From Trichosphaerium sp. ATCC 40318 (lineage: Eukaryota > Protista > Tubulinea), in assembly GCA_038496445.1 (NCBI GenBank), contig JALMLS010000097.1:124001-188000 (forward strand): a stretch of DNA of 64,000 nt. Reading direction: 5' to 3'. The notes under the pieces are model-generated. The model saw only the letters and a program-made list of their open reading frames with translations. It was not told the DNA's origin and made no database searches. A program made the translations under genes and the position numbers. This document shows positions 5,255 to 22,800 of the stretch, piece after piece (position 1 is the stretch's first letter; every line of letters begins with the position of its first letter).

Positions 5255-6213
<959 letters not shown>

Positions 6214-14553: not shown

Positions 14554-15392
14554 GTTATCTAATAACGTACTCTTTGTAGCGTTTATGCTACACATTTTTC
14601 TAACATCCGCTTTTGCGGATGAACAAAGCACTTGAGGCAATATGCACTATTGTGCGGAACCTTTCCTGCTTTAACTTTTTGTAACAGTCAATATCTAATA
14701 TAACCACAATAAAAACCTTCGTCATTTGAACTACAGATTGTTTGTCGTAGAACAAAAGCATCCAAAATACAGAAGCTATCGTGTATTTTTGGAAAACAAC
14801 GATCACCACTTTTGAGGGGTGATAATGGCAGCGCACTGTTAAATAGTAGCGTTATTGGTTCTCTGTAATGCGAATTGGTGCTAAAACAGTTTAAAGGTAA
14901 AGTGGTTTGCTTCTCTTTTTTCTTGTTCTATTCTTGTTCTTTTGAATACCTTCTTGTAGCTATTAATACATTTACATCAATACCTCACGCGAAATAATAT
15001 AAAGGAAGGTGTAATCGTAAGTAAAGATAAAATCATCTTCGTTTAGTAAAAGTCGTACGTTTACACGAATTACAGCCTAAAAGGTTCTTATTGAATGTTT
15101 GGTGTTTTTTGAATAAATAAGGTGCTATTTTAAAAACGTTCATGAATAGTTACGGTAAATATTATGTTTCACGTGCCAACTACTGTTTACTCGAAAATGC
15201 GTTCTTTGCGCGCTCAGGCTAGTAGTTATAAGTGATCCCTTTCCTTATTTAAGAAAAAGAAATGAGGAGTAATCGATTACGATACCTGATTTCACATAAA
15301 ACTCAAACTTAAGTTGGTCGCTAAGTAGGTGTAAATACAATCATAAAACAACTCCTACAACCAATAGCAAACATCCTCTTCGACAAATAAAG

Positions 15393-15804
15393 ATGAACAC
15401 AACAATGTTATTTGTATTGGTCACTTTGGCGTTGATACCAATAGCCTTGACGATCCAATCTAAAGACACTGAAGAAATGCCAGATATGAATGAAAAGAGA
15501 GCAACTGAGGTATAATCCGTACTCCTCAAACAGTTACCTAAGGCTTCATTTAGCAAGGACCATTGCTCTGTGGTGAAACATGTGATGAAAATGGATGGTG
15601 TCCTCCTGGATGGAGAAGACGTGGTCGTGAAAAACGTGGTCAATGTACGTGAATAAAGGATTATTTGAATACTTGTGTTGTACTTACTTTTCGTTTTTGA
15701 TAGGTTCAACTGCATACTGCTACCCTGGATCTCCATTATGTTTCCGCATCAGAAGTGATAAATGGTGTTGCTGGAACGAAGCTGTTTGCGGTCAAACATG
15801 CTGA
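15393..15804 (+). CDS. Secreted cysteine-rich prepropeptide, copy 1 (3 exons)
   Basis: MNTTMLFVLVTLALIPIALT-IQSKDTEEMPDMNEKR-ATEQGPLLCGETCDENGWCPPGWRRRGREKRGQCSTAYCYPGSPLCFRIRSDKWCCWNEAVCGQTC; both introns GT-AG. Confidence 0.88.
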
Positions 15805-16554
15805 GATGACCGCTTGAAAGCGCAGTACTGGCTTCGCTCGCCTTGTGTAAATAAACAAAAAACTAAATTTGTTTAATAAACTTTATTCTGTATCTACGTA
15901 TTGTGCTGGGCATGGGCGTTTAACATTTATTTTTTTTGCCTGTTTGGGATCCTGAAATCATTCAGTATAGTAGTCGACCTTTTGATAGTACATGTCTACC
16001 AATAAAACCTTGAAAACTCAGTACATGGCTTTATCACACTTTCTTTTTACACTTCGGTAGATCCTATCTCCTTCACAAGCGAATAAAATAGGCTACTTCA
16101 AGCTTCTGCAATACATTAACACGACTGAGGCACGTAGTTTATCACATAAGATCACGGGCTAGCTTGCAAAAATGGTTCAAAAATTTATGCTCATTTCTTC
16201 ATCAATACCACTGGTTGAATGTTGCATTTCCTGACAATTGTAGAGGATCGTGCCTCTTTATTTAATCAGTACAATAATGCTTTTTACAGTAAACTGTTTC
16301 ATCAAGAAGCCACTCATCGTTTCATTGAATGAATGTTTAGGCTAACAAATACAGTGGCAAACAACGCATTTCCGGCAATGTTCTCTTATTTCGAGTGTTG
16401 TAGCATATTTTATGTCCAACATTTGTTTGCAGATTTTGAAAGAAAATTACCCGAAAAAATAGGTTTACCATAAATAAAGCCGTTTAAGTTCCGTCCTCAC
16501 AGAATCATAAACTCAAACCTACCTAACATAAACAACTCTCATTAAAATAATACA

Positions 16555-16965
16555 ATGAAAACAACTGTACTTTTCGCCTTTGTCCTCATGGCATTGACTG
16601 TTGCCTTGGCGGTCCAATCTAACGAGATCAGTGAAAGAGCCAAAAGAGCAACTGAGGTAAGTCAAAACTGCTGGGTTCATAGCCTTATCTAGATATAACT
16701 AACTATGTCATTTAGCAAGGACCATTGCTCTGTGGTGAAACGTGTGATGAAAATGGATGGTGTCCTCCTGGTTGGAGAAGACGTGGTCGTGAAAAACGTG
16801 GTCAATGTACGTGAATAAAGGATTATTTGAATACTTGTTTGTACTTACTTTTCGTTTTTGATAGGTTCAACTGCATACTGCTATCCTGGATCTCCATTAT
16901 GTTTCCGCATCAGAAGTAGTAAATGGTGTTGCTGGAACGAGGCTGTTTGTGGTCAAACATGCTGA
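16555..16965 (+). CDS. Secreted cysteine-rich prepropeptide, copy 2 (3 exons)
   Basis: MKTTVLFAFVLMALTVALA-VQSNEISERAKR-ATEQGPLLCGETC..IRSSKWCCWNEAVCGQTC; same exon structure as copy 1. Confidence 0.88.
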
Positions 16966-17150
16966 GATGATCGCTTAAAGACACTGTAATGACTTTGTTC
17001 ACATGAACAGACATAAATAAATACTACAGTAACTCCCATGTTCTAAAAATTACTCCGTGGTTTATTTCTACAAAAAATTAAAAGCTCTTCTGCTGTGGCT
17101 TAAGTTTCTAGAATTCGGTTTTTGCCTTGTAGACAGGATCTAGACTGTCC

Positions 17151-19865: not shown

Positions 19866-22800
19866 TCAGTTACTGTTAGCAACTGATACATCTGATATTT
19901 GTACACGTGCAGTCGATACTTCCTCAGGACTATCATGTCGAAGCTTTCCAATAGGCACTGTAGGCAAATGTGTTTCGCCCATTAGCTGCCTATCAATTTC
20001 AGCTGCAGCACAACGTCCTTCGTTGATAGCCCAAACAACCAACGATTGTCCTCTTCGGCAATCACCAGCCGCAAAAACTGGAGCAAGTTCGTCATTGTCT
20101 ACAGTAAAGTATGTTAGCTATAGTAAATTCTACTTTGGTTGTGTCGTACCTTTCAATGATGTTGTGAATTTGCCATAGCGTGCTTTAAAATCGCCAGTTT
20201 TAGTACGTTCTATTGGGCTACCTGCACGCTCGAAGACGTCATCAGGCATATCAGGACCACTAAAACCAATGGCAATGATTACAATATCTGCAGTGTATGT
20301 CTTGCTCTTTGACTCGTCAATGGCGAGTCCATAACCGCCTGAAACATCAGACCATTTGTACCCAACAGTCTTAACGCCCTTAACATTGCCGTCTTCATCT
20401 AAAATCCAAGTAAGAAAAACCACAAAGAAGAAAGCAATAAGAAGCATACCAGCAACGAGTTCTACAGGCTTCGTGAAAAATAGCCGTGGGTCCTCATTCC
20501 ATTTAGCCATTGCTTCGCCATGTGCGTAATCTACCTTATACACACGTGGCCATTGTGGCCAAGGATTGCTATCATTTCGTCTGCAGAGAAATAAGTTGGG
20601 TGAAAGCGATGAAAGGTTATCGTACTGCTCTGGTGGTCTAGGAAGTACTTCAAACGATACTACGGACTTGCATCCATGTCTAATGGCTGTACCAATACAA
20701 TCAGCGGCAGTATCACCTCCACCAATGACGACAACACGCTTGCCCTTGGCAGAAATATAGTCGCCTTTAGGCAATCCATTGTCTAGTGCTTTGATTGTGC
20801 TGTTCAAGAACTCCATAGCGTTCAAAACACCCTTGGATTTTGTACCAGGTATATCAAGAGCGCGTGGCTTTGCAGCACCCACGGCTAGAAGTACAGAGTT
20901 GTGTTCTCGTCGCAATTGATCGAACGTGATATCCTTCCCAATCTAGAAGGAATGGATTAATATAAGTTTTCTCTTTATTTGGTGTACCTCCACGTTTGTA
21001 ACAAACTTGATACCGGATTGTTCCATTACCTTCCTTCGTCGTAACACGACAGATTTTTCGAGTTTCATGGATGGGATACCATACATTAGCAATCCACCAA
21101 CGCTATCATCTCGTTCATATACAGTAACCCAATGGCCGGCTTTGTTCAATTGATCAGCTGCTGCCAACCCCGCTGGACCGCTACCAACAATAGCAACGCG
21201 TTTACCGGTTCTAAATTTTGGATTATTGGGCTTAATCCATCTAAATCACGTGTTAGTTTACGGAGAACGAATAATAAAAACGGTTTTAGCGTACCCTTCC
21301 TTAAAAGCACGCTCAGATATTGAGTATTCCACGTTTTTGATAGTGACTGGTTCGTCTGTAACGCCAAGTACGCATGCACCTTCACAAGGAGCAGGACATA
21401 CACGACCAGTTATTTCTGGAAAATTATTGGTCTTGTCGAGTGAGAGGAAGGCTTCCTTCCACTGATCATGGTACACAAGATCGTTAAAATCAGGAATATT
21501 ATTGTGAATAGGACATCCAGCGTCTGATTGACAAAATGGTACACCACAGTCCATACACCTTGCAACTTGTCTCTTTTCTTCAGCACGTTTTTGTAGGGTG
21601 TATATCTCGTCCCAATCCTGTACACGATCAACTGGATCACGGTACGGAGCGTCCTTCCTTCTAAACATTTTGAAGCCTTCGACTTTGTCCAATCCCTATT
21701 TTCACTGTTTAGTTTTGTAGATATGTAATCACTATAACGTACGTGTGGTATGGCGTGTTGGAATTTATTCCACAAATCGTGTTGTTGTCTTGACTCTTGA
21801 TCCAATTTTCTCTTTTCAATCTCTTCAGCAGATAAGTTCGAGATGATTTTACCCAAGAATTCATCTTGTTGAAGCTGAAGTAATCCTTGTTTAGCACGAC
21901 GTTGTTGTACAACACGTCTATAATCATGTGGGTACACTTGAATGAATTCATGTTTATGTCTATCCCAGTCTTTTAAGATCTCCAGCGTTACAGTAGACCT
22001 ATAAAGTAAGTAAGCCATGTATGGCAACTCTGTTGCAAGTACATTGTGTATTTGGCATGCTTTATCAATAGAGATTTGACAAGTGTCTGTGATTCTTCCT
22101 CCATTGGGATTAAGTCAACCATGCCTTTGTTAACATTGTTTGTAAACGTGTTAGCGCTAGCACCTTACTCATAGTTAGTTTATGCTGATGGTAGCTTGTT
22201 AAAGCCTTTGTTCGTACCTGGTGCCCATACGTATGCAATGCCGCCAGACATGCCTGCTGCAAAGTTTCTACCAACTGCACCAAGGACCACAACCCTTCCG
22301 CCAGTCATATATTCGCATGCATGAGCGCCGACACCTTCAACTACGGCGTGTGCCCCAGAGTTCCTGACAGCGAAACGCTCAGCGACTTCTCCCCGAATGA
22401 AAAGCTCTCCAGCTGTAGCACCATACAGAACTGCATTTCCTGCTACAACGTTCGATTCTGTCTCCTGCAGATTTGTGTTTTGAGGAGCGACAACGATTCT
22501 GCCACCACAGAGACCTTTTCCAACGTAATCATTAGCATCACCGTTAAGCTGGATGGTAACACCCCTAACGTATAAAATATAAGCGAAAAAACCACGTGAA
22601 TGATTGTGTTAGAAGTACCTTGTCAAGAAAGCACCAATACTTTGACCAGCAGACCCAGTGAGCTCCAAGTGGATTGTATCATTAGGTAGTCCAGTGGACC
22701 CGTGTTTTTTAGTTATCTCATGCGAGAGTGTTGTTCCGATAGCACGATCTGTGTTACACACTCTGTATGCCCGAGTGATACGTGCAAGGTCATTTATTGC

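Follow-up and report, generated by a model that had tools for sequence, protein, structure and literature searches.

Two transcribed members of an amplified, apparently lineage-restricted family of ten-cysteine prepropeptide genes in Trichosphaerium sp.

The window (64,000 nt of contig JALMLS010000097.1 of Trichosphaerium sp. ATCC 40318; positions given below without a contig name are counted in it) had been read in a preliminary description, from the letters alone, as carrying at 15393–16965 a tandem pair of secreted ten-cysteine prepropeptides, possibly a new peptide family. The locus raises the question of whether two genes that no open reading frame displays as a whole are real, to what they belong, and what their product would do for the cell. 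Both genes are transcribed and belong to an amplified gene family, probably multiplied for dosage and apparently restricted to this lineage, in which they represent a minor 66-aa subtype.

The gene pair and its transcripts

The source DNA is eukaryotic with short GT-AG introns, and the coding sequences were obtained by splicing the window sequence at GT-AG sites. Both were open after splicing and gave two three-exon genes on the plus strand (15393–15804 and 16555–16965), in agreement with the two hidden prepropeptide genes proposed earlier. The plain list of open reading frames of the region has exon-sized pieces only (35–53 aa), so an ORF track would show neither gene, as had been remarked.

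Gene 1 (102 aa; introns of 44 and 59 nt): The 5' UTR was placed at 15343–15392 (+), with the transcript start within an initiator-like TCA(+1)TAAAAC motif. Exon 1 (15393–15509, +) encodes an alpha-class leader, comprising the putative signal peptide and the acidic pro-piece KDTEEMPDMNEKR, and then the mature residues ATE; it is followed by intron 1 (15510–15553, +; 44 nt, GT-AG, phase 0) and by exon 2 (15554–15644, +), which carries Cys 1–3 and the cationic x14 loop and ends in phase 1 within the codon of Cys 4. Intron 2 (15645–15703, +; 59 nt, GT-AG) leads to exon 3 (15704–15804, +) with Cys 4–10 and the TGA stop, and to a 3' UTR (15805–15888, +) in which AATAAA-type signals were read from the sequence.

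Gene 2 (97 aa; introns of 59 and 58 nt): The proximal promoter and 5' UTR (16437–16554, +) contain, as read by motif, a ATAAATAAAG box and a ATCATAAAC initiator-like element, and the same region is conserved with beta-leader copies of the 66-aa type (72–73% over ca. 115 nt against the sequences upstream of the copies on contigs C55, C152 and C480). Exon 1 (16555–16656, +) encodes a beta-class leader (putative signal peptide, pro-piece NEISERAKR, then ATE); intron 1 (16657–16715, +; 59 nt, GT-AG), exon 2 (16716–16806, +), intron 2 (16807–16864, +; 58 nt, GT-AG; the same as intron 2 of gene 1 apart from a 1-nt indel) and exon 3 with the stop codon (16865–16965, +) follow in order. The 3' UTR was drawn to the limit of contig cover (16966–17011, +).

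Both precursors are built from a short polar N-terminus, a hydrophobic core of 18–19 residues, a ...QS motif, a pro-piece ended by KR, and a 66-residue peptide that begins with ATEQGP and has Cys as its final residue. The cysteine spacing given in the preliminary description, C-x3-C-x5-C-x14-C-x4-C-x6-C-x8-CC-x5-C-x3-C, is exact in both products; the x14 loop reads PPGWRRRGREKRGQ.

Contigs of cDNA from two public runs (X1 and X2, belonging to two studies) were aligned to 15250–17050. X2 contig 9 (322 nt) begins at 15343 and matches 15343–15507, 15552–15644 and 15704–15746 with 0 mismatches (100% over 301 nt); a SMART-type template-switch adapter (GGTATCAACGCAGAGTACGGG) directly precedes 15343 in this contig, and this position is accordingly the 5' end of the gene 1 mRNA. 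Upstream of several other family copies, ATCATAAA(A)C-like strings were noticed by eye, unaligned and uncounted. Both introns of gene 1 are skipped exactly (15510–15553 and 15645–15703), the first, a skip of 44 nt, in one X1 contig and one X2 contig, and the second, a skip of 59 nt, in four X1 contigs and one X2 contig. Since both GT..AG joints occur in X1 contigs as well, the X1 run includes processed RNA. The 3' UTR of gene 1 (to 15888; X2 contig 10 spans 15717–15888) and exon 3 with the 3' UTR of gene 2 (16865–17011; X1 contig 8 and X2 contigs 12–14) are covered at 98–99% identity. A further X1 contig joins 16596–16654 in exon 1 of gene 2 to an exon 2, aligned on the near-identical copy of gene 1 (joint 16654->15552). 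Both genes are transcribed, and the introns of gene 1 are spliced as modelled, contigs of the two runs lacking both of them; this runs against the lack of expression or of the modelled splicing by which the preliminary description would have been refuted. The contigs cannot rank expression level.

One X2 contig lies on the minus strand between the two genes (16021–16303) and has the template-switch adapter at 16303, where a capped transcript seems to start; it runs away from gene 2, ca. 250 nt upstream of the gene 2 ATG, and 16021–16303 contains no minus-strand ORF of at least 30 aa. This transcript may be a divergent product of the gene 2 promoter; in other pairs the corresponding site is occupied by a head-to-head partner.

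Copies, leaders and selection across the genome

In exon-wise searches of the 70.3-Mb assembly, exon 2 was matched at 49 sites and exon 3 at no fewer than 50, distributed over more than 20 contigs. Complete three-exon models were obtained by script for 41 copies, and three more copies were found intact by eye, two of these with a GC donor in intron 1; the modelled introns measure 44–77 nt and are GT-AG throughout except in two damaged copies. About 49 family loci were counted, of which ca. 40 are intact and nine are broken or partial (frameshifts, stops, lost start, lost last Cys, or exon 2 only). The two copies with GC in place of GT at the intron 1 donor (ACTGAG/GCACTT; C12:685159 and C12:655887, both +; loci L010 and L046) are otherwise intact, and their first introns are probably GC-AG introns. 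Among the modelled copies the window pair is the only same-strand tandem; other neighbouring copies are arranged head-to-head (630–690 nt between exon-2 starts, 1187 nt on contig C55) or tail-to-tail. The same-strand tandem described earlier is real, and what had been put forward as a candidate new family turns out to be a minor subtype within a family of 49 loci.

A repeated element was met at three loci (C25 at ca. 341.0 kb, C3 at ca. 769.0 kb and C131 at ca. 123.6 kb; L049:1450–2000 (−), L050:1480–2030 (−) and L051:1250–1720 (+)). Its three copies end with an open reading frame (...MAFEGGSPRM*) and a long A-rich tail, and directly after each tail stands a degenerate piece of the family (end of exon 2, intron 2, exon 3). 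Such an arrangement suggests that a retroelement has captured or transduced part of the gene.

Peptide types and selection were evaluated on 37 intact copies, the latter by the Nei–Gojobori method on 61 mature codons. Type A (65 aa, 26 copies) has the loop ...RKRGREKNGQ and the C-terminal end ...WSEAACGSC; type B (65 aa, six copies) has the loop ...RKRGREKRGQ and the C-terminal end of type A; type C (66 aa, five copies) has the loop ...RRRGREKRGQ and the C-terminal end ...WNEAVCGQTC. Two of the intact type C copies are those of the window, two lie on contig C55 and one on C152, and three broken type-C-like copies are to be added. In the family as a whole, two or three residues separate the last two cysteines (x2 or x3). 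The dibasic motif of the loop, RKR or RRR, is present at the same place in all intact copies, and R-x-K-R is found only in the minor types, the main type A reading REKN (26 of the 37 intact copies analysed). The loop with RRR and R-x-K-R that the preliminary description had singled out is present in the window pair, then, but is not a family-wide trait.

Substitution values were as follows: within type A, dS 0.20, dN 0.005, dN/dS 0.024; within type C, dS 0.17, dN 0.0125, dN/dS 0.07; type A vs type C, dS 0.36, dN 0.079, dN/dS 0.22. Very strong purifying selection acts on the mature peptide. One identical peptide is encoded by 15 copies through 14 distinct coding sequences, with 23 synonymous positions variable among them; the invariance of the peptide is, for this reason, mostly a matter of purifying selection and not of youth. 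The exact intron skips of the cDNA contigs, the same three-exon structure at 49 loci, and a dS of 0.20 against a dN of 0.005 together place these loci far beyond chance as real genes.

The two genes of the window share a homogenised mature-peptide cassette (gene 1, 15546–15820, +; partner in gene 2, ca. 16708–16981) composed of exon 2, intron 2 and exon 3, which extends from 8 nt before exon 2 to ca. 15 nt beyond the stop. Within it the genes are 97% identical (8 substitutions and 1 indel in ca. 265 nt; exon 2, 98%; intron 2, 58/58; exon 3, 95%), whereas outside it identity falls to 69% in exon 1, 55% in intron 1 and ca. 50% in the flanks. Gene 1 is thus a mosaic: its exon 1 has 92% DNA identity to the alpha leaders of type A copies, but in exon 2 it agrees with type C copies at 97% and with type A at only 87%, and no other alpha-leader gene carries a type C core. 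Exon 1 of gene 2 has 96% identity to the remaining beta leaders of the 66-aa type. A shared cassette behind unrelated leader exons points to gene conversion: with leaders of different class and a recently homogenised block from exon 2 to exon 3, gene conversion or recombination in intron 1 moves the mature-peptide module between leaders. Hybrid leaders, with a beta-type signal and an alpha-type pro-piece or with a 3-aa insertion, were found at four loci (C224:10883, C287:36299, C465:13359 and C12:682526) and show that recombination between the alpha and beta classes takes place inside exon 1 also.

Relatives and comparison with known systems

Relatives were sought with single exons of 30–32 aa each. 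Pfam, searched exon by exon at E <= 10, gave no match for the mature exons, and the only defensin-type match (Defensin_propep on the gene 2 leader, E 0.59) is at chance level. A word index of 5.8 billion proteins gave no candidate; the query was exon 3 within a 94-aa open frame of a paralogue, a frame chosen so that full-length proteins would fall within the length range of the word search. The exon-3 profile had 0 matches among 1.84 billion representative proteins, profiles of exons 2 and 3 had nothing beyond chance matches among PDB sequences, and in metagenome, viral and prokaryote genome contigs pattern matches were present, none of which was confirmed. In the ESM Atlas feature search with exon 3 the best score was 0.81 (lantibiotic and scorpion-toxin clusters), below the useful threshold, and a literature search found no description of such a peptide family. 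Over all these searches of proteins, PDB sequences and contigs no known family was matched, in keeping with the earlier statement on defensins, macins, saposin-like amoebapores and acanthaporin. The missing relatives are weak evidence, because the queries were exons of 30–32 aa and the lineage is poorly sampled; the latter follows from a conserved neighbouring enzyme, whose best matches reach at most 44% identity.

This neighbour (20130–20915, −), a 261-aa open frame, is similar to glutamate synthase small subunits (Pyr_redox_2). Most of its best matches are bacterial; few of them carry an organism name, and these are planctomycete or other bacterial metagenome proteins, which, on this resemblance, could hint at a gene of bacterial origin. 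At 5716–6213 (+) the window also contains an intronless core histone gene (Histone fold, E 3e-46; ORF of 165 aa from a TTG start).

Structure prediction was made on exon 3 alone. The AlphaFold model (pLDDT 62.8) has a beta-hairpin of low confidence as its only secondary structure.

In architecture the family resembles the Cys-rich prepropeptides processed by Kex2 or furin (antimicrobial peptides, toxins, KEX2-processed peptides of fungi), with which it has in common a putative signal peptide, the short pro-piece, the KR directly before a small disulfide-rich peptide, and the clustered multigene organisation. It differs from them in having no sequence or Pfam link to any, in a peptide that is near-invariant and not diversified, and in two interchangeable leader exons for one mature cassette.

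Knottins (inhibitor cystine knots of spiders, cone snails and plants) have the generic spacing C-C-CC-C-C and the topology I–IV, II–V, III–VI. The last six cysteines of the peptide, all in exon 3 (C-x6-C-x8-CC-x5-C-x3-C), are compatible with this spacing, which is a lead only. They are preceded by four more Cys and a basic loop of 14 residues, and the searches gave no match to a knottin family; the pLDDT of the exon-3-only model, 62.8, is too low for a disulfide topology to be read, and the best Atlas feature score was 0.81.

With the WAP domain and crustins the peptide shares G-x-C-P at its beginning and ...CC-x5-C-x3-C at its end, and eight of its ten Cys could be placed in the WAP order; WAP requires C-x5-C-x5-CC, however, and the peptide has C-x6-C-x8-CC. 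The four-disulfide core was rejected on this spacing and on the lack of a PF00095 match to exon 2 or exon 3 at E <= 10 (exon-wise, not on the joined domain). Defensins (CS-alpha/beta and beta-defensin) and macins were rejected as well: CxxxC is present and CxC is not, and the mature exons have no Pfam match. Amoebapores, naegleriapores and acanthaporin are small disulfide-bonded effectors of amoebae, secreted or granular, as the present peptide would be, and likewise encoded by several gene copies; the peptide differs from them in having ten Cys and not six, in its richness in Gly, Pro and Trp, and in the absence of a saposin-like Pfam match. Saposin-like pore formers (SapB; six Cys, all-helical, ca. 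77 aa) were therefore set aside, there being no SapB match to either mature exon, ten Cys, and a predicted beta-hairpin (exon 3 alone, low confidence).

Proposed processing and role of the peptide

The leader has a short polar N-terminus and a hydrophobic core of 18–19 residues, and on sequence reading its ...(V/I)QS motif fits the −3/−1 rule. In 37/37 intact copies analysed, KR stands before A/S-T-E-Q. Four loci with a Peptidase_S8 match followed by a P_proprotein domain on the same strand (C36:153211–154893, C188:94006–95799, C27:38486–40347 and C11:113930–114710, all −) encode candidate kexin/furin-like convertases, and removal of the pro-piece at KR is plausible in view of these subtilase and proprotein-convertase P domains. 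By established secretory-pathway biology, the precursor would enter the ER co-translationally and be cleaved by signal peptidase after ...QS; five disulfides would then form; a kexin/furin-like convertase would remove the pro-piece after KR; and a single-chain peptide would be released with its positive charge in one Cys-bounded loop of 14 residues. The mature peptide has a mass of ca. 7.2–7.5 kDa, pI 8.1–8.4, a net charge of +2 to +3 and four Trp; the Cys-bounded loop by itself carries +4 to +5.

That this is a real, expressed family of secreted-type prepropeptides with cassette exchange is, at the gene level, very probable. A near-invariant product from ca. 40 intact copies would imply selection on the quantity of one molecule, and selection for amount suggests an extracellular effector or a material made in bulk, where 'made in bulk' is a reading of copy number alone. 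The full statement, in which the transcribed and amplified family yields a bulk-made extracellular effector, has about an even chance of being right. As to its role, antimicrobial or prey-handling defence is the best guess, ahead of others. Antimicrobial and toxin families usually diversify, and a structural or housekeeping extracellular role fits about as well, since the peptide is near-invariant and only weakly cationic (+2 to +3).

A bolder version would combine a new disulfide-rich fold and a mass-produced effector with interchangeable leaders that set delivery or regulation, the gain of R-x-K-R in the 66-aa subtype adding a two-chain state; in this complete form it is doubtful.

In a serious, though rather unlikely, rival reading the peptide is not directed at other organisms but is structural material, supplied in stoichiometric amounts to build the cell coat, the cyst wall or an adhesive matrix. 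Some 40 copies with an invariant product and a dN/dS of 0.02 resemble the dosage amplification of structural or housekeeping products and not that of arms-race effectors, and the low net charge agrees with this. The peptide, however, has only 65–66 residues, with no repeats and no low-complexity or glycosylation-rich region; no carbohydrate-binding domain was recognised in Pfam, exon by exon, and bioactive peptides are the more usual products of propeptide cleavage at KR.

The effector reading takes the peptide as a single chain. In the preliminary description, cleavage of the x14 loop by a furin/kexin-type protease was proposed, by which a 3-Cys N-chain and a 7-Cys C-chain would be held together by disulfides in an insulin-like maturation. 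The loop of the window pair has both RRR and R-E-K-R, the dibasic RKR/RRR is kept at the same place in every intact copy, the same genome must cut the pro-piece at KR and encodes kexin-like convertases, and the 3 + 7 division of the cysteines means that the chains would need cross-linking; insulin and relaxin likewise have internal basic sites between two Cys-bearing parts of the precursor. The second site is not family-wide, however, the 26-copy main type having R-E-K-N instead of R-x-K-R. No excisable connecting piece is conserved, and the loop, unlike a typical spacer, is conserved as strongly as the rest of the peptide. Basic sites within tight disulfide-bounded loops often escape cleavage, which also counts against the proposal. 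Membership of the insulin/relaxin superfamily itself was rejected, the cysteine pattern not being that of B-chain C-x11-C and A-chain CC-x3-C-x8-C, with the second basic site missing in the main type and no Pfam match to either mature exon. Cleavage at the universal RKR/RRR might still give a two-chain product; the R-x-K-R site is missing in 26/37 intact copies, the Cys framework is not insulin-like, and the insulin-like maturation as a whole is unlikely.

Still a serious rival to the effector reading, if an improbable one, is a canonical tight-binding protease inhibitor, in which the Arg/Lys-rich loop would be the reactive site and trypsin-like or kexin/furin-like proteases the targets. In its favour are a small, disulfide-rich framework and a single basic loop, exposed and strongly conserved, between cysteines, and R-x-K-R and K-R are convertase recognition motifs; yet exon-by-exon searches matched none of the inhibitor families of Pfam (WAP, Kazal, Kunitz, TIL, Bowman-Birk or others), the PDB gave no sequence match, and the idea comes from pattern reasoning only. 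A secreted signalling or pheromone-like peptide, comparable to the prepro-pheromones of ciliates, would share the prepro architecture and a Cys-rich mature part of 65–66 residues, but signals do not usually need ca. 40 gene copies, and pheromone families are polymorphic between types where the present peptide is near-invariant; this is very improbable. A last reading, in which repeats or transposons have spread copies without function whose frames persist only through youth, is hardly credible. In its favour, gene fragments follow the poly(A)-rich tail of the repeated element at three loci, nine loci are broken and gene conversion is active; against it speak a dS of 0.2–0.5 with almost no amino-acid change (the dN/dS values already contradict the reading), spliced transcripts, and exons that are intact although intron length varies between 44 and 77 nt.

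For annotation, the result means that dozens of expressed genes in the Trichosphaerium sp. genome are invisible to ORF-based tracks. The family stands out by its copy number, its invariance and the modular make-up of leaders and cassette. It is a clean natural case of dosage amplification with exon-level exchange of a cassette between two leader types, and one in which concerted evolution can be separated from purifying selection. Should the peptide prove to be an effector, a protist lineage that has hardly been sampled would have supplied a new scaffold for antimicrobial, inhibitor or toxin-like activity.
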